This document shows positions 13,432-60,507 of a stretch of DNA of 64,000 nt, piece after piece. A program made the translations under genes and the position numbers. This DNA is from Prasinococcaceae sp. CCMP 1430 (taxonomy: Eukaryota; Plantae; Prasinodermophyta). Positions within the stretch are counted from its first letter, which is position 1, and each line of letters starts with the position of its first letter. The DNA lies in contig RQSC01001125.1 of the NCBI GenBank assembly GCA_013416795.1, forward strand, positions 1 through 64,000, read 5' to 3'. The notes under the pieces are model-generated. The model ran no database searches. It was not told the DNA's origin and saw only the letters and a list, made by a program, of their open reading frames with translations.

Positions 13432-16400
13432 TCAGAGCGCGTCTACGACGTCCAGCCGGACGGTGAGCGGTCTCTGCGGCACCTCCGCTGGTCGCGCCTC
13501 GAGGGTTGCCGCCACGAGCTCGTCGAAGTCCTGCTGCGTCTCCAGACGAATGAGGTCACCCTCGCGGTCCAGGTAGCGCATCTTCAGCGCGGCGGGCGGG
13601 GCGCAGCCGATGGCGGTGGCCACGCGCGCGATGACGGTGGCGAGCGCAGCTTGCGCGGCGGGCATGCGCACCCGCACAGTTTCGCCTCCGTACCTGCGCG
13701 TGATACATTGTCGAACGCGAAGATGCGCAGCGGCATCACGGGTCAGCCACGCGGGTGTGGTGGTGGTGGCGTCGTGTGTGTGGTGGTGGTGGTGTAGCGC
13801 AGTTTTCACGAGTGGCACGAGCGTCCAGGGTGAGCGCACGCACTTGGCTTTGATCACGATGTCTCCGCTGTCTCCGCACGCAGTCACGTCGGACCCCGGC
13901 TGCGTAATCTGCTGCTGCTGCAGCGCGTTGGTCTGTGGCAAGTTCTCTTGGTGCACGTAGCCGCTCGCAGTGGGGTCGTTGGTGTTGCCCCCCTCGGGGA
14001 AATTCGACGCCTCCTCGGGCGAGCCGTCCTTTCCAGCACCGCGCGGCACCACGTGGTGGGGCGCGGGCGGGGCTGGGCCGATGGGAAGGGCGCCGACCGC
14101 CAGGGGTGGCACTCCTGCCAGCCTTGCGAGGATGTGATGCGGGCCAGCGTGCGGGAGCTCTGCTTTCTGCATCAAGTGCGCGGCCTGATGGCCCGCCGAG
14201 CCGCCACAGTCCTCGCCATTTGCAGGCGTGCTGACGCCAACGAGCTGTGCGAGCATGCCGGGCGTCAGGGCATGCGTCGCCAAAGCGTAGGGGGCGTTAG
14301 TCTGCCCAGGCGTGGCCGGAAGGCTCCCGGGGAGGGGCGTCAGCGGAAATGGCGACATGCCAGGGCCGAGCGGCGTAAAGCCTTGCAGGCTCAGCAGCGG
14401 CGGCGTATGGCCCGACTGTCCCAAGGGGAGGGAAGCGCCTAGCCCCGCCATCATGCCCCGCGGGGGCACATCTCGTGGCATGACCCCTTGTAACGTCTGC
14501 GTGCCGTACTGGTATGGTGAGAGCTGAGGAGGGCCGCCTCCTTGCCGAGGGGGGGCGACCGCGGCGTCGCCATTGCCCGCATCAGGCACGGCCTCGGTGT
14601 GCCCGTAGAGACCGGCGGACGCCGCTAGCCTCTCGCCGTGGGGCAATGACGACGGTGTGCGCGCGTGCTCGCCAGCGACACCGCCGCCGTCGGCGCCAGA
14701 TGGCGTTGCACCAATCGACCCCAGCGCCCCCCCGCTGACGTCCTCGTGCAGCTTGCGCAGATCAGAGTCCATAACGTCCATCTTCTTGAGCTTCCTGCAA
14801 GGCCAGCGCATGATGCCGTGCGCGCGGCAGATGCGCTTTAGAGTAGTCGTGCAGACGCCGAGCGCCTTGGACGCGTCGACGAGCTTCATGTGGAAGTGAC
14901 TCTGCAGCGTCTGGATCGAAACGCCTCGATCAGACTGCTTTCGCTTTTTCGCGCTCTGTTTGTCACCCGCCGTGTCGCGCGCCGATGGGTTGGGATCATC
15001 GGCAACCCCTGTGGCCGCAGCTCGGGCGACATCCGTCGGCTGCGCTGCCCGCTCGTCGTCTTGCTGCACGAGCTCGATGCGTTTGAGCTTTTGCAATTTG
15101 TTTCGATGCTTGGACGAGCCATAAAATGTGCCGCTGTCCTCCTCCACCGCGCTCGATGGGGCGTGTGCTGGCGCCGTCGTGGCGCCACCAGCCGCGGTTG
15201 CAGCGGTCGCAGCAGCTGCAGCAGCGGCGCGTGCGGGCAACTCGCCAGCTAACGCCTCCTCCGCTCTCTCCTTGGCCTCGGAGTCCTCGCGTGCTCGCCT
15301 CTCCCTCTCGAGGCGGCCGATGTCATCGGGCAGCACCAAGCGCACATCGACTCCGCATTCCTTCGCGCCAGTGCGCGTGAGCTCTGCAAGCTGAGCGATG
15401 ACCCTGGCAGCGGCGGTGGCGACGGCGTCGCTGCTGCGGGAGGCCATCCCCCGAAACACAATCTCGACAACGACGCGGCATGTGCGGCTCTGCTCTGCGT
15501 CGCCTGCCGCCACCGTATGTGTCTGTGCCATCTCACGCGCTCGCTCCTCCCCCGTGCTCCCCGCCACCGTCTGCTCTGCGGGCGCTCCATCTCTCTGAGA
15601 GCCGCCGTCCTTGGTCCCTCCTTGCCGATCGGCCTCCGGCTCGCGTGCGCCCGGCGCACTGTCCTCGGGTAACGGCATTTGGACAGCGTCTATTGCGCAC
15701 GAGGCCAAGCTGGTCGCTCCGCTGATGCGCGCCACGTCCCGCAGGGGACACTCGAAGAGGTCGGCGGAGGCGAGGTCGGCCGTCACCACCAGGGAACCCT
15801 CGTCGAAGGCCCGCACGACACTGGGCGTTCGTGTCGATGCCTCAGATTGCCGATAGCTCGCCGTCGACGTGTCGTAACTCTGCGAGCAGCACACGCGCCG
15901 GTAGCCCCAGGCGGCACTGCCTTTACCTGAGACAGCGAACGGGAAGCGCGCGGCGGAGAGGCACGGCGGGCTTGGTGCAGTTCGCAGGGCATCCGGCTGC
16001 GGCCCCCGCTGTTGCAGTTCGTCGCCCCCCTGGCCGCTCAGGAACCTTGCTGGACCGCCGTCGTCGAGCGCCCAACACTGAACCAGCATCACCTCGACGT
16101 CGCCCACCGCGCCGCCGCCGCTGCGAGCACAGTCGAGGCCAGAGTCACCACTGAGGAGTTTGATCATCGCTGGCGCGAGTCCTGCCGGCACGGGAACGCG
16201 CGGGACGCCGGCGAGGTCGGCGCTGCCCCACGCGCCCGGGGGGACCGCCACGTCCACGCTGCCCGCCGCCGCTGATGGCGGCGGCGGCGGGCTCGTTTCG
16301 ATCCCCTCCTTTCGTAGCAGCGCCTTCACACGCCCGCACATCTCCTCTTTGAAGTGGATATCTTCCGCCAGGCTGGTGACCTCGAGCACGCCGTACGCGC

Positions 16401-17042
16401 CATTGAAGCCGTGCGGGGCGGCCCCAGGCGTCGGCTCCTCGCTCGCGCCGATGAAGAGCGGCAGCGCCATGGTCGCGCGCACGCCCAGGGAGTATGCTTT
16501 GCCGAGCCGTAAGAATTCTTCGTCTCGATAGAGGCTGACGTTCGGGCTGAATTCCGGCCGGCCGCTCAGCAGCACGCGCCCGGGCATGTGCGCGCGCGCC
16601 GCGCCGCGCGCGAGGCGCATGTCGAAGTCACAGCTGTGGGTGCGATACCGCGCGAGCGCCCCATTCGGGCTGCGCGACGCTCCGCCCGCACCCAGCGCGA
16701 ACGGCTGCCCGAGCGTCCTGGCCATGTGCGAGCCACCCTTTGACTGGACGACGCGCCACACCTGTGCGATGCAAGCGAGCGGTGCGAGCGCGCGACGCCG
16801 TTGCTGTAAGCTCGGCAGGGCGTGCGCGGGCGTGCGCGTCGCATGTTTTTTTGGCGGCGCGCTCTGATCGCACTACGCCGGGTGGGTCTCCCCTCCGACC
16901 CGCGCCGCGCGGCGGGGCGCGGAGGCGCGCAGACGCTCTCGCCGACATCCCGCGCGCCACGTACCTGCACGAGAATGTCATCGGAGCTCTCCGCGGCTCG
17001 CGTGCACACGCGCTGAAGGGCGGCGTTGTAGTCGTCGGACAT
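13432..17042 (-). CDS. NLP: NIN-like protein (GAF-like N-terminal region + RWP-RK + C-terminal PB1); exons 17042-16965, 16761-13844, 13693-13432
   Basis: Exon1+2 join gives DILVQ|VWRVVQ...RTLGQPF (NLP N-terminal motif). RWP-RK domain SIQTLQSHFHMKLVDASKALGVCTTTLKRICRAHGIMRWPCRKLKK. Splicing of 13694-13843 gives PB1 VIKAKYGGETVRVRM...MRYLDREGDLIRLETQQDFDE. Confidence 0.92.
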
Positions 17043-17353
17043 ATTTCAGGGAAACCCCTCTCTCCCCTTCCCTCGGTGCGTACCACCAGCGACGAGCCAC
17101 AGGGTGGCTCGCCGCCACTCTTGACGGGCGCACGCGCGTCGCTGGCGCCCCCGCACGCGCACGGCCGGCCGTCAGGGCGGCCGGCGCCTCGTGCCAGTCG
17201 GGCCCGAGATGCCCACTGGCTGGCGGCGGTGCGCGCGCGCTGCCCCGGGGCGCCGTTTTTGCTGTTTGGCGCCGAGCGAGAGGCGGCCGAGGAAAAAAAA
17301 AACGCGGTCCCACGAGCGGCGCTCGGGCGCTCCCGCCCGCGCGGCCGCTCCGC

Positions 17354-18009
17354 NNNNNNNNNNNNNNNNNNNNNNNNNNNNNNNNNNNNNNNNNNNNNNN
17401 NNNNNNNNNNNNNNNNNNNNNNNNNNNNNNNNNNNNNNNNNNNNNNNNNNNNNNNNNNNNNNNNNNNNNNNNNNNNNNNNNNNNNNNNNNNNNNNNNNNN
17501 NNNNNNNNNNNNNNNNNNNNNNNNNNNNNNNNNNNNNNNNNNNNNNNNNNNNNNNNNNNNNNNNNNNNNNNNNNNNNNNNNNNNNNNNNNNNNNNNNNNN
17601 NNNNNNNNNNNNNNNNNNNNNNNNNNNNNNNNNNNNNNNNNNNNNNNNNNNNNNNNNNNNNNNNNNNNNNNNNNNNNNNNNNNNNNNNNNNNNNNNNNNN
17701 NNNNNNNNNNNNNNNNNNNNNNNNNNNNNNNNNNNNNNNNNNNNNNNNNNNNNNNNNNNNNNNNNNNNNNNNNNNNNNNNNNNNNNNNNNNNNNNNNNNN
17801 NNNNNNNNNNNNNNNNNNNNNNNNNNNNNNNNNNNNNNNNNNNNNNNNNNNNNNNNNNNNNNNNNNNNNNNNNNNNNNNNNNNNNNNNNNNNNNNNNNNN
17901 NNNNNNNNNNNNNNNNNNNNNNNNNNNNNNNNNNNNNNNNNNNNNNNNNNNNNNNNNNNNNNNNNNNNNNNNNNNNNNNNNNNNNNNNNNNNNNNNNNNN
18001 NNNNNNNNN
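17354..18009. other. Assembly gap (N run)
   Basis: Run of N. Confidence 1.
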
Positions 18010-46413: not shown

Positions 46414-46764
46414 GCACAGGGCGCCACACGCGCTCGGGCGCCTGTAGCAGAAGACACGGGCGTGCACCTGCCCATTAGCGCACGCTCGGGGAAGGCAAGC
46501 CCGCAGCGCACGGGCTGTGCTCGTCATCGAGCGTGCCGCGGCTGCGCCCACGCGTTCGTAAGTCTTCCTGACGTTCCTGGCGCCGGCGCCCGCTTCCGTC
46601 GCGCGAAGCAGACAGAGGGGGGAGAAATGGAGGCTCGTTTAAAAATAAAAAATGGGGGCTTGTCCGTCCGGGAGACCTGGCACGCCGCTGCGCGCCACAC
46701 GCACGGGCGCGCGCGCACGCGCGCGCACACGTGCGTGCGAGCACACACACACGCACACACGCAC

Positions 46765-47409
46765 ATGAGTTATCTCATCCCGCACCTGGCCAACGGCTGG
46801 GAGGTTGACCAGGCCATCCTCAGCGAGGAGGAGCGCGTGGTGATCATGCGCTTTGGCACCGACGGCGACGCGACGTGCATGCTCATGGATGAGGTCCTCG
46901 CGGGCATCATGGACAAGATCAAGAACTTCGCAGGTGTGGAACGCCGGGCGAGAGCGCGCGAGCGCGAGCGCGAGCGCGAGCGCGAGCGCGAGTGCGTGCG
47001 CGTGCGCGTACGCTTGCGCCGCAGCCGCAGATGCGGCGCAACGCTGACGCGCTGCGGCGCAACGCTAACGCACCGGCGCGCCGCTGCTGTGCCCGTCTAC
47101 CCCACGCTCCCACCCACCCATCCCTCGCGTGCGCTGCGGACGAGTGCAGTCGTGTACTGCGTGGACAACCAGAAAGTGCCGGACTTCAACTCGATGTACG
47201 AGCTTTACGATCCGTGCACGGTCATGTTCTTCTTCCGGAACAAGCACATCATGGTGGACCTGGGCACGGGCAACAACAACAAGATCAACTGGGCGCTCAC
47301 CGACAAGCAAGAGTTCATCGACATCGTGGAGACCGTGTTCAAGGGCGCGAGGAAGGGCCGCGGCCTCGTGGTCTCGCCCAAGGACTACTCCACCAAGCTC
47401 CGGTACTAG
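46765..47409 (+). CDS. DIM1: U5 snRNP thioredoxin-like protein Dim1/TXNL4A; intron 46934-47149
   Basis: MSYLIPHLANGWEVDQAILSEEERVVIMRFG...CMLMDEVL; VPDFNSMYELYDPCTVMFFFRNKHIMVDLGTGNNNKINWA...KGRGLVVSPKDYSTKLRY. Confidence 0.97.
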   Translation: MSYLIPHLANGWEVDQAILSEEERVVIMRFGTDGDATCMLMDEVLAGIMDKIKNFAGVERRARARERERERERERECVRVRVRLRRSRRCGATLTRCGATLTHRRAAAVPVYPTLPPTHPSRALRTSAVVYCVDNQKVPDFNSMYELYDPCTVMFFFRNKHIMVDLGTGNNNKINWALTDKQEFIDIVETVFKGARKGRGLVVSPKDYSTKLRY

Positions 47410-47584: not shown

Positions 47585-48245
47585 CTACCAGGTTCCGACG
47601 GCGTGCTGCGAGGGGTTCTCATAGGCCTTGAGGTCCCACTTTGTGCCCACGGCGAACGGCTCGCTGATTTTGACACCCGCGTCCGTGACTGTGCCCATGA
47701 CGAACTTGTTGATTGAGTTCTTGTCGCGGTAGTAACACACGGACAGGCAGCGCTCCATCAGCGCGCGCGCCTCCACGGCGCTCATGTCCGGCCTGTGCTC
47801 AGCGCGCAGCAGCGGGATGGCCAGGTGGTTGCCGAAGCCCGTGGCAATCATGTCATCTTTGTACGCAATCCCCAGCAGGTTGACCGACCCCAGGAAGCTT
47901 TCCCCCTTGCTGCGACCGGCGACCACGAGCGAGTTCCACAACGGGTCGAGCTTCGAGCGCCTGTTGTACATCACGCGCGTCAGGTAGCTGTGGACCTCCT
48001 TGGGCTCCAGCGGTGCGCCGTCATCCTCACAGAAGTCGTCGGTGGCGATCTCGTCCAGGTACTTCATGATCTGTGTGGCGTCCGACACCTCGCCGCCGAA
48101 ACCAAGGCACGTCGTCTCGTTCACCTTCTTAATGCGCACGACGTCCTTGTAGCGCAAGGTCGAGCCGTAGGCGGCCAGTGTGTCCGCGGCGATCATCACG
48201 CCGTCCGCGTACGTGAACGCCACCACGGATGTGCCCGTCACGTAC
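47585..48245 (-). CDS. PBG1: 20S proteasome subunit beta-7 (PSMB4/PBG1 type); main exon; short upstream propeptide exon(s) unresolved (about 48340-48600)
   Basis: YVTGTSVVAFTYADGVMIAADTLAAYGSTLRYKDV, GEVSDATQI, YLTRVMYNRRSKLDPLWNSLVVAG, ATGFGNHLAIPLLR, YYRDKNSINKF. Confidence 0.95.
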
Positions 48246-49193
48246 TGGGTTGCGCGCGGCAGCGGCAACAGGCGCAGGCATCAGACCGCGTTTTCGCACC
48301 GCGGCAGCGAGCGTTGGGCGAGGCGAGTGGGTCAGCGTACGTGCTCGGCCGCGCGTGAATGGCACTCGCAGCGAGCGCGGCCGTGAGCAGTCAATCAAAG
48401 GTCGGCGCTCTGGGAGCGGCATTCCCGAGCGCCCCGCCGCGGTGCTCCTGCGCAGCGCCATGCTGCACGCACCGGGTACTTTGTGTGCGACTTCGGCCCC
48501 GCGCGCCCGGGCAGCTCCACCGCCGGCGGCGCCGACCGCGCGGGCGCGACGCCACGCGAGCGAGCGCATGCGATCCTGCCGGCATCTGGAACGCCATATC
48601 GCGCGCCGTCGCCCGCACGGGCGGGGGTGCGAGGCGGCGCCCCTCGCGCCTCGTGCGCGCAGTGGGCTGCGCAGCACGTGCCGAGCGCGTCGCGCGCGCG
48701 CGCGCCGGCAGATCTTCCGCTCGCCGAAACCGCTGCGCCGAAAGCGCTGCGCTCCGCAGTTTCGATTGGCGATCCGCAGCCCGCGGCGCGCATGGGCGCC
48801 CATAGCGGAACGCAGAGCGCAGGACCGGACGGGACTTTGAAATCCGCACGCGGGTGCCAACGCGATACCAATGCGCAATGCGAACATATTGACATTGGTG
48901 CATGCAGGTGCACCTGCACAGCGCACGCGCGGTCCTCCACTGCGTGCGCCGCGATGAGCGGCCAGTGAGTGCGGGCGCTGCAGAGCCCCCCGTGCACGGC
49001 ATGGCACAGCGCGGTGCAGGCAGGGCTGCACAGAGCGCGCGCAGCGCAGGGGAGTGCGGTGGAGCGAGAGCGAGCGGTGGAGAATTGATTGAAGGTGTTG
49101 TAGTTACATGTGCGGCGCCGCTCTGTGGTGCCGCCCCGCCGCGGGGAAGAGTGCCCGCGCGGCGAGGCCCTGGCAGAAAGGCGTAGCTTAGAA

Positions 49194-50060
49194 TTACTTG
49201 GCGACAGGGATGGTCGCCTTCACCGCAGCGGCGAGATCCGCGTCGGTGGTCCACGGCGGGAAGCTCCACTTCTTGTCCACCTTCGCGAGCGGGCGAGCGG
49301 GCGGGCGGGCAGACGCATTCGCAGCGAGCGCGAGGGATCACGCGGCGCGGCGCAGGCAGAGGTCAGGGCGCGTGCGCATGTCCATGTCAGCGCTAGCGCA
49401 GGCATGTGCGCGCTTGCCGGCGCGCTGCACGCAGGATTTCCCAACGAGCGCTTCCGCCGCGAGCGTTGCCGGCAAGGCCGCGCGGTCGCGCACAGGCGAA
49501 CGCACCATCGTCGTGACGTCGTACTCGTGGTCCGGGACCGCCGGCTGAGTGTTCTCGATGAATTTGCCGTAGAAGCGGCCGGACAGAGTGAGCCAGTCCG
49601 TGCCGCGGACATGGACGCCGGCCTCGAGGAGGCCCCAGTAAATCATGCCGAGGCAAACGTAGAGGGTAAGCAGGATTGCCGTGATGCGCGCCCAGTCCTT
49701 GGGGTAGATGCCAAGGATCTTGCCGGCGTTGCTCTGTTGAAGAGGATCAGTGGGGATGAGGGGAGGGGGGGGGGGGGTAGAAGGACCGTCAGTGCGTGCG
49801 CTGCACGTGCACTTGTGCCGGCGCACATCACATTCCTTTCCACACTGGGCACAAGCACGCGCGCGCACGCCCACACGCAGACGGCACCGGGACCGCTCGG
49901 CAGCGTGGGCCCGCGAGCACGCATGCACGACCGGGCGCGATCCCTACGGCGCCTGCAGGTGCATCAGCGGCAGCGGCCGGCCGCGGCCACCGCTGCTGCA
50001 GCCGCCCCGCCCACTGGCGGGTGGGCGGTGGATGGGTTTGGGACGGAGCGGCGCTGCCAT
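49194..50060 (-). CDS. Small single-pass membrane protein; confident exons 49733-49506 and 49280-49194, first exon uncertain (candidate ATG 50060); TM region resembles the Na+/K+-ATPase beta subunit
   Basis: CTGAT branch point + CAG acceptor at 49734-49736, GTGCGT donor at 49505, GC3-rich codons; SNAGKILGIYPKDWARITAILLTLYVCLGMIYWGLLEAG...YDVTTM|VDKKWSFPPWTTDADLAAAVKATIPVAK*. Confidence 0.75.
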
Positions 50061-50636
50061 TTTTCCTGCCGCATTTCGTGCGCTTTTCCCCAGCAGGCTT
50101 GCGGGCGCGCGCGCCGGGGTGTGCCCACTCCTCCCGCCTCCCTCCCTCCCTCTCCACGCCCCCGATCGACGCGCTCGAGGTTCGGGCGGGACGCGCGTCG
50201 CAAGTGCCGTGATGGCATCGCGGAGGTGCGCGCGCGGGCGTGCAGGGATAGGCGCGCGCGGCCGACGTCGCGCGCGCGCGCGCGCGAGCACCCCCGCCCG
50301 CCCACCCCAAAAAGCCCAAAAAACGGTGCAAAAAGTGACAAGAGAAAACCCTCAGCGTACACACGCACGCACAGGGGCGCGGGCGTGCACGCACTGGGGC
50401 CACGCCGTCGCCAACCGACGCGCGCACCTGCCAATCGCAAACACGCGTCCGCGCGCCTTCGGATTGGGAGCAGTCAAGCAGCGCGTCGATTCATGGAGTC
50501 TGGTCAGAGGCGCGGAGCGAGACTCAGGGGCAAGTGTCAAACTCAAGTTTTGCGTTCAACAACATTGGCGTGTGTGATCCAGCGACAAGCGCAACGGCGT
50601 CTGTCGCCACGGGTGGCGCGTGGGCCGTGCCGACGC

Positions 50637-50891
50637 TTAGCGGCCGGCATCCGCGACGATGAGCTCCAGCGGCTTCTGCACGGTGGGGGCGTACACGCCG
50701 CTGGCGAACACCAGCGCCACGCCCGAGCCCACGATCACCAGGGTGAGGATCCAGCCGAGGACCACCTTGCCCAGCAGCTTGTAGTTGACGCCCTTCGAGC
50801 CCTCCATCCACGCAACGGCGGAGGTGGCGCCCACCTGGCAATGCGTGGTGGACAGCGGCCAGCCCTGGCGCGAGCCGATGATGATCACCAG
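50637..50891 (-). CDS. C-terminal fragment of a PiT/SLC20 (PHO4/PTB-like) phosphate transporter; the rest is missing at the single-N join 50892
   Basis: IIGSRQGWPLSTTHCQVGATSAVAW...GVNYKLLGKVVLGWILTL is the second PiT signature. Confidence 0.85.
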   Translation of the reverse strand: MVIIIGSRQGWPLSTTHCQVGATSAVAWMEGSKGVNYKLLGKVVLGWILTLVIVGSGVALVFASGVYAPTVQKPLELIVADAGR

Positions 50892-51438
50892 NACGCGCGC
50901 GCGCCGGGCGACCGGCCGCGGGACGCCGCGTTTCGGCGCCGCGCCACCGCGTTTTATTAGACTAGACTAGACTACATATTCGTAGTTTTATTTGGCTCCC
51001 GCCGTGACACATTCTCTGACGCGCGGCGTGGGGCGAATGCGCTTTGACGAGTCAAAATCAAAATCAAAATAAAAATAAAAATAAAAAAGCCGTCGGTGGC
51101 ACAGGCCAAACAGCAGGCAGCAGGAGCGTGCGACCCACGAAAAAGCAACACGAAAACCTCTCAACCGCACGCACTTTTTAATCTAAGAAAAAGAACAGAA
51201 AAGAAGAGAAAAACGGGCGAAAAAAAAAGGCGGCCGGACGCGGCACCCGAACGGGCGGGGAGCGGCGACGCGCCGGTCCGCGCCGCGCGCGGGAGCGCAG
51301 CGCTCGCGGCGGCGGGCGACGCGTCTGCGGCGTGGGTGCGTGTGCGTGTGCGTGTGTCTGTGTGTGTGTGGCCAGGGGGCGTCAGACGCACGCCTTGGCG
51401 CGCGGGGGGTGCCGGCGCGGGCGCGCGCGGGGGTAGCG

Positions 51439-56324: not shown

Positions 56325-58273
<1,949 letters not shown>

Positions 58274-58647
58274 NNNNNNNNNNNNNNNNNNNNNNNNNNN
58301 NNNNNNNNNNNNNNNNNNNNNNNNNNNNNNNNNNNNNNNNNNNNNNNNNNNNNNNNNNNNNNNNNNNNNNNNNNNNNNNNNNNNNNNNNNNNNNNNNNNN
58401 NNNNNNNNNNNNNNNNNNNNNNNNNNNNNNNNNNNNNNNNNNNNNNNNNNNNNNNNNNNNNNNNNNNNNNNNNNNNNNNNNNNNNNNNNNNNNNNNNNNN
58501 NNNNNNNNNNNNNNNNNNNNNNNNNNNNNNNNNNNNNNNNNNNNNNNNNNNNNNNNNNNNNNNNNNNNNNNNNNNNNNNNNNNNNNNNNNNNNNNNNNNN
58601 NNNNNNNNNNNNNNNNNNNNNNNNNNNNNNNNNNNNNNNNNNNNNNN
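58274..58647. other. Assembly gap (N run)
   Basis: Run of N. Confidence 1.
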
Positions 58648-58874
58648 AGCGGCACGGAGTCGGGCACCCGCGCGGACGGTGCGAGCGCGACGCACCTGAC
58701 GGGCCTGCGGCGCAGCGAGCTGGAGGCGTGGGCGGCTGGCGCGCTGCCGGAAGGCCTCGCGACGCCCGCGCGCGCACGTGCGCTCTGGCGAGCGCTGTAC
58801 GCTGCGTCGACCGACCCGGACGCCGTGTGGCCTGCCACGGCCGAGTCGCTCGTCGCGGCGGGCGTGGGCGGGAA
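58648..58874 (+). other. Isolated exon-like fragment resembling the N-terminus of RlmN-family radical-SAM RNA methyltransferases
   Basis: HLTGLRRSELEAWAA...P.RARALWRALY...W....ESL...G..K fits the remembered L.G....EL..W...P..A..LW..LY pattern; GTACGT donor at 58875. Confidence 0.5.
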
Positions 58875-58879
58875 GTACG

Positions 58880-59983
58880 TGGCGGCGGCGGCCGCTGGGA
58901 GCTCGCGGCCGAGCACGCGGCGGCGGCACGGCGCTGCCGGCGCCGCTCGCGGCGGCGGCGTGCCTGTTTTGCTTCACGCTCGGCGCCACGCTCAACACGA
59001 TGGATGCGCTGCCGTCGCTCGGCGCGGGCGCCGGGTTCGGGCCGCACGGGACGGCTGTCCGTGCACACGTGCGGCGAGCAGCGGCGGAGGTCAAGCGCAT
59101 CGGCGCGATTGATCCTGTGCCTGGTGGGGATGCACGCTCGGGCGGGCCGCGCGACGTGTTTGCAGCTGATTCCGCTGCAGCGAGCGGCGGCGGTGGTGCG
59201 AGTGGCGGGGACGCGCACTCGGGAGGGCTTCACGGCGTTCCGCTGCCCGCTGGCGCGCAGCAGTACCGCACTGCGAGCGCGGTGGGCGCCACGGGCAATA
59301 ATTACCTCAGCGTGTACCCCTTCCAGGTGTTGAGCTGGTCACCGCGAGCACTCTACTTTCCAGCCTTCGCCAACCACTCGTTGTGCGAGGAGATCATCAA
59401 GATGAGCGAGCGGCGGCTTGGCCCCTCGGCGCTAGCGCTGAAGCGCGGCCAGACCGCCAAGGGTACGGAGGACATACGCACGTCGAGCGGCACCTTCTTA
59501 TCGGCCAATAGGGATGGCACCGGTGCGCTCGCCTGGGTCGAGAGGAAGATTGCCGAGGTGACTGGCGTGCCGCCCTTTCACGGGGAAGCGTTCAACGTGT
59601 TGCGCTACACTGCAGGCCAGCACTACGACCAGCACTACGACACCTTCGATCCGGCTGAGTACGGCAAGCAAAGCTCGCAGCGCATGTACTCATTTCTACT
59701 GTACCTCAGCGACGGCGTGGAGGGCGGCGAGACCATTTTTCCGAAGAACGACGAAAACCTGCTGAGGAGCGTCGACTACAAAAGTTGCGACGTCGGCCTC
59801 AAAGTGAGCCCGCGCCGGGGCGATGCGCTGCTCTTCTACAACATCGCGGTGAACGGCACCTTCGACAAGGCCAGCCTGCATGGCGGTTGCCCGGTGAAGC
59901 AGGGGACCAAGTGGGTGGCGACGAAATGGGTACGCGACAACGCCCACGGCGAGCTTCGGGACGGGCCCTTCGACGCGTGGTAG
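58880..59983 (+). CDS. P4H: Prolyl 4-hydroxylase (plant/algal type II membrane, 2OG-Fe(II)); start codon unresolved
   Basis: FQVLSWSPRALYFPAF, IRTSSGTFL, GEAFNVLRYTAGQHYDQHYD (HxD), LYLSDGVEGGETIFP, SLHGGCPVKQGTKWVATKW; N-terminal TM ALPAPLAAAACLFCFTLG. Confidence 0.93.
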   Translation, partial: WRRRPLGARGRARGGGTALPAPLAAAACLFCFTLGATLNTMDALPSLGAGAGFGPHGTAVRAHVRRAAAEVKRIGAIDPVPGGDARSGGPRDVFAADSAAASGGGGASGGDAHSGGLHGVPLPAGAQQYRTASAVGATGNNYLSVYPFQVLSWSPRALYFPAFANHSLCEEIIKMSERRLGPSALALKRGQTAKGTEDIRTSSGTFLSANRDGTGALAWVERKIAEVTGVPPFHGEAFNVLRYTAGQHYDQHYDTFDPAEYGKQSSQRMYSFLLYLSDGVEGGETIFPKNDENLLRSVDYKSCDVGLKVSPRRGDALLFYNIAVNGTFDKASLHGGCPVKQGTKWVATKWVRDNAHGELRDGPFDAW

Positions 59984-60507
59984 AAGCCTACGCGTTACGC
60001 TGCTGAGCAGCCAGCGGTGTGCAGCGAGCTCGTTCCCCAGCGGCGATCACCGGCCCGCGATGGCGCCGGTCACCCTCCTTCTCGCATGTGAACCCTAATA
60101 AGGCAACCCATTGTCACCCCAAAACTCCCATTTGCTTTCGAGTCTCATTTCATCCAGTCAACTTGCATTGAACCCAAACGTCCCCAGCGACGCGTCGCGA
60201 GGTCAAAACGAAGGGTCGGGAACGCACACAGGGAAAATTCCATCAGAAACGCTGATCCGATCGCGCAATACTGCGGCCGGCGCCACAGCGCGCGCGCCGG
60301 GGCGACGGGCAGGCGGGCGGGGCGGTGTGGCGCGGCGCGGCCGGGGCGCTCGCCAGTGAGGCCCGCGAGTCGGGCGCGTNCGCGCGAGCGGGCGAGCGGG
60401 CGCGGCTGCGGGCTGGCGGCCGGCCGGCGGCGAGGCGGATAAGGCAGGCGAGGCGCATGGCGTGTGGGCGAGCGATGCGATCGATGCGTAAGCCCGAGTG
60501 AGCTGAC

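Follow-up and report, generated by a model that had tools for sequence, protein, structure and literature searches.

The beta subunits of animal Na,K- and H,K-ATPases carry an ectodomain of ~240 aa that is glycosylated and has three conserved disulfides, and it is this ectodomain that the SYGQ motif in the M7-M8 loop of the alpha subunit binds. A meeting abstract reports that the alpha/beta complex is less heat stable after combined replacement of beta-1 Phe38 and Phe42, or of Tyr39, Tyr43, or Phe50, and describes the opposite face of the beta-1 helix as tolerant of replacement (PMC2268108). A preliminary description of the locus studied here stated that beta subunits are regarded as essentially animal proteins, and the literature agrees: green algae are without a known beta subunit, an insert between M7 and M8 of their alpha subunits having been proposed as its equivalent (PMC7911474), and the origin of beta has been placed in Holozoa, with the SYGQ assembly motif occurring outside animals only in choanoflagellates (PMC9609216). 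Chlorophytes have several classes of P-type ATPase, including P2C pumps in which all of the Na+-site residues are present (PMC3355532), and Ostreococcus and Chlamydomonas do have P2C pumps. In full-text literature searches, we found no paper that describes a beta-like protein in green algae. A conserved algal protein with a beta membrane module would be a concrete candidate for a pump partner, and it bears on how algal Na,K-type pumps fold, exit the ER, and occlude K+ without beta.

Results

Structure of the gene

The small three-exon gene predicted at 49194-50074 on the minus strand of the window (the whole stretch of DNA that was analyzed, 64,000 nucleotides) is a real gene; its parts are listed in Table 1. 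Exon 2 begins at a phase-0 acceptor (49734/49733) and has no in-frame ATG ahead of the membrane helix, so that the coding sequence must begin in a further exon upstream. The ATG at 50074 is in phase with this acceptor and, together with a GTGGGC donor at 50014-50009, gives 20 codons, which we infer to be exon 1 (50074-50015). With an alternative donor at 49990, also in phase, exon 1 would have 28 codons. The upstream regions of the window gene and of a Tara Oceans relative could not be convincingly aligned over exon 1. The preliminary description had placed the gene boundary at 50060, but the ATG there does not match the phase of the exon 2 acceptor. The spliced open reading frame that it proposed was recovered, since the 33-residue string that it quoted is residues 4 to 36 of the exon at 49733..49506 (minus strand), and the short C-terminal ectodomain that it put at ~70 aa is, by translation, 68 aa past the helix.

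Table 1. Predicted features of the gene and its protein, with positions in the window and, for individual residues, the beta-1 residues with which they are aligned by profile A1
Feature	Position	Strand	Beta counterpart	Remarks
Exon 1	50015..50074	-		Putative; ATG + 19 codons, basic cytosolic N-tail
Intron 1, 281 nt	49734..50014	-		C-rich polypyrimidine tract, CAG acceptor
Exon 2, 76 codons	49506..49733	-		Juxtamembrane motif, membrane helix, and conserved post-helix block
Intron 2, 225 nt	49281..49505	-		GTGCGT donor, AG acceptor
Exon 3, 28 codons + TAA	49194..49280	-		WSFPPW and C-terminal helix
Cytosolic juxtamembrane motif ILGIYPKDW	49692..49718	-	FLGRTxxSW (animal beta)	Family consensus LGIxxxxW
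Membrane helix, W14-L36 of exon 2	49626..49694	-	Residues 32-54 of beta-1
Extracytosolic block after helix, E37-F58	49560..49625	-		Arg43 invariant, G56 and F58 near-invariant (column statistics)
G8 (family)			Gly26 (beta-1)
W14 (family)			Trp32 (beta-1)
I17 (family)			Ile35 (beta-1)
L21 (family)			Tyr39 (beta-1)
L24 (family)			Phe42 (beta-1)
Y25 (family)			Tyr43 (beta-1)	In 20/21 sequences
L28 (family)			Leu46 (beta-1)
Y32 (family)			Phe50 (beta-1)

Exon 3 is closed by a TAA stop at 49196-49194. The join between exons 2 and 3 is confirmed by the Tara Oceans relative on contig L001 (53 to 58% identical), because this relative, which is without intron 2, reads straight through the same exon 2 and 3 frame uninterrupted. 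GC3 is 0.86 in the coding sequence, compared with 0.72 to 0.74 in the introns, in a gene region of ~70% GC. Between the window gene and the Tara relative, dN/dS is 0.67 at a dS of 0.65, a comparison that is near saturation and affected by strong GC3 bias.

The environmental protein P0001 is 100% identical to exon 2. Both public environmental gene calls at this position, P0001 and P0027 (161 and 235 aa; 49338-49928), are unspliced read-through ORFs that run into both introns, and no correctly spliced public model of the gene was returned by any search. Public annotation misses or mis-models small spliced genes such as this.

Features of the predicted protein

The predicted product of ~124 aa consists of a short basic N-tail, one membrane helix of ~23 residues, and a 68-aa (40 + 28) outer tail in which both Cys and N-x-S/T sequons are absent. 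Lys and Arg residues of the 124-aa model are concentrated in the N-tail, and by the positive-inside rule this charge distribution favors an N-in, C-out orientation, which is the topology of beta subunits. The protein would be a single-pass type II membrane protein, with a short cytosolic N-tail, one helix, and its C terminus outside. One face of the helix is conserved (W14, I17, L21, L24, Y25, L28, Y32, and L36), and G8 and W14 of the juxtamembrane motif, which align with beta-1 G26 and W32, are near-invariant in the family. The E37-F58 block that follows the helix is family specific and has no counterpart among beta chains. In exon 3, WSFPPW (49251-49268) is this protein's version of a family [FY]PW motif, of which PW is conserved family-wide. 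A link between [FY]PW and the YYPYY motif of animal beta was considered and dropped, there being no search result in its favor.

AlphaFold2 models of two relatives (the Bryopsis member and the orthologue P0002) have block-mean pLDDT values of ~95 to 98 over the helix, and pLDDT values below 55 over the outer domains, which have no confident fold in these two models. The P0002 model contains a small hairpin at LGI..W, a helix of 33 residues, and another helix at the C terminus (residues 108-121). A Foldseek search of the PDB with the low-confidence model of the Bryopsis member gave no match.

A family in marine green algae

An exhaustive phmmer search of 1.84 billion proteins with exon 2 (E<=1e-3) gave 21 matches, of which 19 carry the motifs that define the family; the other two, a repeat protein and a bacterial-looking protein of 516 aa, are clearly spurious and were dropped. 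The motifs are LGIxxxxW, LY..LGL.YW in the helix, an invariant Arg 7 residues past the helix, an FGDF block, and a distal [FY]PW. In the window protein they take the forms ILGIYPKDW, LY..LGM.YW, R43, YGKF, and FPPW; this protein departs from the family at two positions, where the usual Pro51 is Ser and the usual D57 is K. The preliminary description had suggested that homologues be sought in other marine algae, and they are indeed found in Bryopsis sp. KO-2023, Cymbomonas tetramitiformis, and Pyramimonas obovata (a complete transcript ORF), all annotated "hypothetical" or "uncharacterized" with no precomputed Pfam domain. The remaining members are marine metagenome or transcriptome sequences. 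In all, there are ~19 relatives, none of them annotated, with 25 to 58% identity and from several green-algal classes, the closest being from Tara Oceans contigs (53 to 58%). Based on these motifs, we place the window protein in a marine green-algal family that has no annotation.

No homologue from Ostreococcus or Chlamydomonas was among the exhaustive phmmer matches to the single query exon 2. A word-indexed homology search with exon 2 gave no candidates, and one with P0012, the most beta-like member of the family, returned only P0012 itself and P0013. Across the family, the outer parts range from ~40 to ~175 aa, and many of them are Cys rich and end in C-x-N-P. The window protein is among the short, Cys-free forms, and the term "ancestral" that had been applied to it is not sustained by this range.

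Two further members were seen in their genomic context. P0012 is encoded at L005:2286-2789 (plus strand; ENA metagenome, eukaryote) and has a second exon that encodes an outer domain with VFPW; its intron translates in frame to His/Thr-rich low-complexity sequence, and the public protein model ends inside the intron. P0034 is encoded on L009:1-4015, a compact eukaryotic contig of 70 to 75% GC that is likely to come from another GC-rich picoalga, and it has a HAD-riboflavin kinase fusion gene downstream and a MYG1 gene 80 bp away.

Similarity to the sodium-pump beta subunit

By itself, the window sequence is no more beta-like in these searches than expected by chance. A Pfam scan of the window exons gave nothing at E<=10, and phmmer with exon 2 against the PDB (177,635 distinct sequences, with matches listed at E<=10) gave no beta chain at that threshold, the best match being SecG at 0.045, with a xylanase also matched by chance. 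The closest orthologue, P0002, likewise gave only chance matches in the PDB and no significant beta chain; the chance set for exon 2 and P0002 was SecG and PsbB.

The family profiles, on the other hand, retrieve beta chains. With profile A1 (19 sequences), all 16 PDB matches are Na,K- or H,K-ATPase beta chains, the best being 8k1l_B (E of 1.6e-4), with a HMMER bias of 0.0. With profile A3, made from a re-made alignment, 14 of 15 matches are beta chains (best E of 1.4e-3), and with profile A5, which is the family alignment minus its three most beta-like sequences, the matches are weaker (best E of 8.5e-3) but are again beta chains in 14 of 14 cases. Searched alone against the PDB, P0012 has beta chains as its top 12 matches (best E of 0.007), in a gapless alignment of 47 aa that spans the non-hydrophobic cytosolic segment W..[FW][IL]W....FLG.....W. 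P0012 is tied to window exon 2 at an E of 7.6e-6 in the library of 1.84 billion proteins and has the family FPW motif in its next exon, and it therefore genuinely links the two groups. The profile searches depend on one another, and the beta chains belong to a single family; taken together, the results amount to a single profile match over ~45 residues (half of them hydrophobic helix) that is specific, repeatable, and of moderate significance. Generic helix composition fails as an explanation for this match because the thousands of unrelated membrane proteins in the PDB are essentially absent from the results. The similarity beyond generic transmembrane composition on which the preliminary description depended is to that extent borne out, with almost only beta chains retrieved from 177,635 PDB sequences.

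PF00287, the Pfam family of beta subunits, is the sole recurring Pfam family and the top Pfam match in 7 members (E of 0.0016 to 0.34), with every match confined to profile positions 8-54 of 284. The score of every member is below the gathering cutoff of 23.3 bits; the best is that of P0012 (18.1 bits; E of 0.0016), and the other six members have E values of 0.0018 to 0.34. At the profile level the similarity covers beta-1 residues ~13-58. It ends at the helix, and the outer domain has no similarity to the beta ectodomain; the window protein has no large (~240-aa), glycosylated, three-disulfide ectodomain.

These results divide the central claim of the preliminary description, that of a beta-like homologue, into a part that holds and a part that does not. 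The family profiles do retrieve beta chains, and the similarity of the juxtamembrane segment and helix to bona fide beta chains is seen at the family level only, the window sequence alone having no match. The proposed HMMER check against PF00287 was similarly divided, with no match to the window exons and a top-ranked but sub-threshold match in 7 members. The 10 gapless identities in 33 positions that had been counted against beta-1 become 9 of 33 against the beta-1 sequence of the PDB match, in which the first residue, taken to be G, is K. The resemblance to X,K-ATPase beta subunits is supported as specific at the level of family profiles. The family is not to be filed under PF00287, because its scores stay below the gathering cutoff and it lacks the ectodomain features. 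The best name for it is a beta-like family of green algae; it would work like the beta membrane module, from which it probably descends.

Conservation of one helix face

Along the helix, conservation recurs with a period of ~98 degrees (shuffle P values of 0.006 to 0.0001, depending on the bounds of the segment). Because L21, L24, Y25, and Y32 align (Table 1) with beta-1 aromatic residues at which combined replacement is reported to lower alpha/beta heat stability, the conserved face of the family coincides with the alpha-contacting face of beta.

Neighborhood of the gene

At none of the four loci that were compared (this window, Bryopsis, Cymbomonas, and the Tara relative) does a P-type ATPase or alpha gene adjoin the family gene, and synteny around the gene is not conserved across them. 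Its neighbors in the window are the ordinary housekeeping genes of a DIM1 (U5 snRNP) homologue and a proteasome subunit (46462-47409, plus strand, and 47585-48268, minus strand). Upstream, on the same strand as the gene, is an 83-aa C-terminal piece only of a PHO4-family phosphate transporter (50637-50888, minus strand), and two Pfam scans of ORFs found no further PHO4 exons within ~2.5 kb upstream. This piece may be a gene fragment, the product of an odd intron, or an assembly join. There is an ambiguous base at 50892, just before the PHO4 piece, and beyond it the sequence of the 50637-51230 region is AT rich and of low complexity (tagtc repeats, followed by tttta/ttttg runs), which is unusual for a genome of 70% GC. 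Elsewhere in the window, low-GC stretches occur at 16001-18000 (0.49) and 58001-60000 (0.57), compared with a window average of ~0.69.

Discussion

It is extremely improbable that the locus is no gene at all but a chance ORF in DNA of 70% GC. GC-rich DNA does yield long spurious ORFs in all frames here, and the environmental gene callers produced only the unspliced read-through sequences P0001 and P0027. Against this, there are relatives of 25 to 58% identity in several green-algal classes, one of them a complete transcript, as well as canonical splice sites, an intronless orthologue that confirms the exon join, and the higher GC3 of the coding sequence than of the introns. A different reading accepts the gene but takes it to belong to an orphan green-algal family of type II membrane proteins that resemble beta by convergence or by chance; in that case, the conserved side of the helix would serve self-association or some other partner, and the function would be at the surface, in the cell covering, or in the secretory pathway. 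The sub-threshold Pfam scores, the lack of any beta match to the window protein or P0002 alone, and the lack of synteny with a pump gene are all consistent with such convergence. So is the nature of the rest of the protein, since the best-conserved features (the invariant Arg, FGDF, and [FY]PW) have no beta counterpart and the variable ectodomains, often Cys rich and ending in C-x-N-P, are more like those of surface proteins. However, four separate searches retrieve essentially only beta chains from among thousands of membrane proteins, the match reaches into a cytosolic segment that is not hydrophobic, and the conserved helix positions coincide with functionally mapped aromatics of beta-1. 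We consider convergence rather unlikely and infer homology; that the cytosolic juxtamembrane motif and helix are homologous to the module of animal Na,K-/H,K-ATPase beta is, from these comparisons, likely.

If the module is truly homologous to that of beta, its partner could still be something other than a P2C pump, such as a P2A, P2B, P2D, or P3A ATPase, or its role could be unrelated to pumps, as is that of mammalian BetaM. To our knowledge, the beta helix module pairs with P2C alpha subunits in all characterized cases, and the solved structures retrieved by the profiles are beta chains of Na,K- and H,K-ATPases. SYGQ, for its part, binds the beta ectodomain, which the algal family does not have in any case. 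A different partner would be in keeping with the several classes of P-type ATPase that chlorophytes carry (PMC3355532) and with the co-option of beta homologues for other roles (PMC4778017). On balance, we regard a partner outside P2C as improbable.

The reading that we favor, with somewhat better than even confidence, is that this gene, with its beta-homologous module, most likely encodes a small beta-like accessory subunit of the P2C pump of the alga. Once inserted in type II orientation, the protein would use the conserved side of its helix to dock onto M7/M10 of the P2C (Na,K-type) alpha subunit while the pump is being assembled in the ER. The candidate subunit would stabilize alpha as animal beta does, acting as a partner in assembly and stability. 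The short outer tail, which includes Arg63, YGKF, and FPPW (124-aa numbering), would rest on the surface of the membrane, where it could touch the extracellular insert of alpha, and this M7-M8 insert of the algal alpha would take the place of the missing beta ectodomain.

A broader proposal, which we put forward tentatively, is that the helix and juxtamembrane module is far older than Holozoa and that marine green algae have two-subunit P2C pumps, in which a mini-beta of ~100 to 240 aa gives the helix and the M7-M8 insert of alpha gives the cap. Animal beta would then be an ancient anchor that was fused to a later, larger ectodomain. If true, this would either move the two-subunit P2C architecture much earlier in eukaryotes or reveal a transfer between lineages, and it would define the minimal part of beta that is needed for pump assembly. 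Heterologous expression of algal sodium pumps, for example in the engineering of salt tolerance, might also become easier.

Comparison with known accessory proteins

Accessory subunits of P-type ATPases are not confined to animals. The CDC50/LEM3 beta subunits of P4 ATPases are needed for ER exit of their pumps and are widespread outside animals; no similarity to CDC50/LEM3 was seen in our searches. FXYD/gamma proteins, phospholamban, and sarcolipin are, like the algal protein, small single-helix proteins; they are accessory proteins that pack on the membrane domain of P2 ATPases. FXYD proteins differ in being type I with an FXYD motif, and the SERCA regulators phospholamban and sarcolipin differ in being tail anchored; neither group showed similarity to the algal family in the PDB or Pfam searches.

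The closest resemblance is to the Na,K-/H,K-ATPase beta subunits (PF00287; ATP1B1-4, ATP4B, and insect Nervana), which are also type II proteins with one helix and, in the cytosol, a short basic tail. Both groups have an LG(4-5 residues)W juxtamembrane motif, and the algal helix has a Tyr aligned with beta-1 Tyr43, on a face aligned with Tyr39, Phe42, Tyr43, and Phe50. Unlike beta, the algal protein lacks the 240-aa glycosylated three-disulfide ectodomain and instead has an outer part of ~40 to 175 aa with motifs of its own (the invariant Arg, FGDF, and [FY]PW). The algal family also differs in that it is sub-threshold in Pfam and lies outside Holozoa, and its partnership with a pump is that of a candidate. 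The remaining comparison is with the M7-M8 insert of algal P2C alpha subunits, which has been proposed as a stand-in for beta, mainly in marine green and red algae (PMC3355532 and PMC7911474). That proposal is unproven, and the insert, being part of the alpha chain, adds no membrane helix, whereas a helix is what the algal protein would supply.
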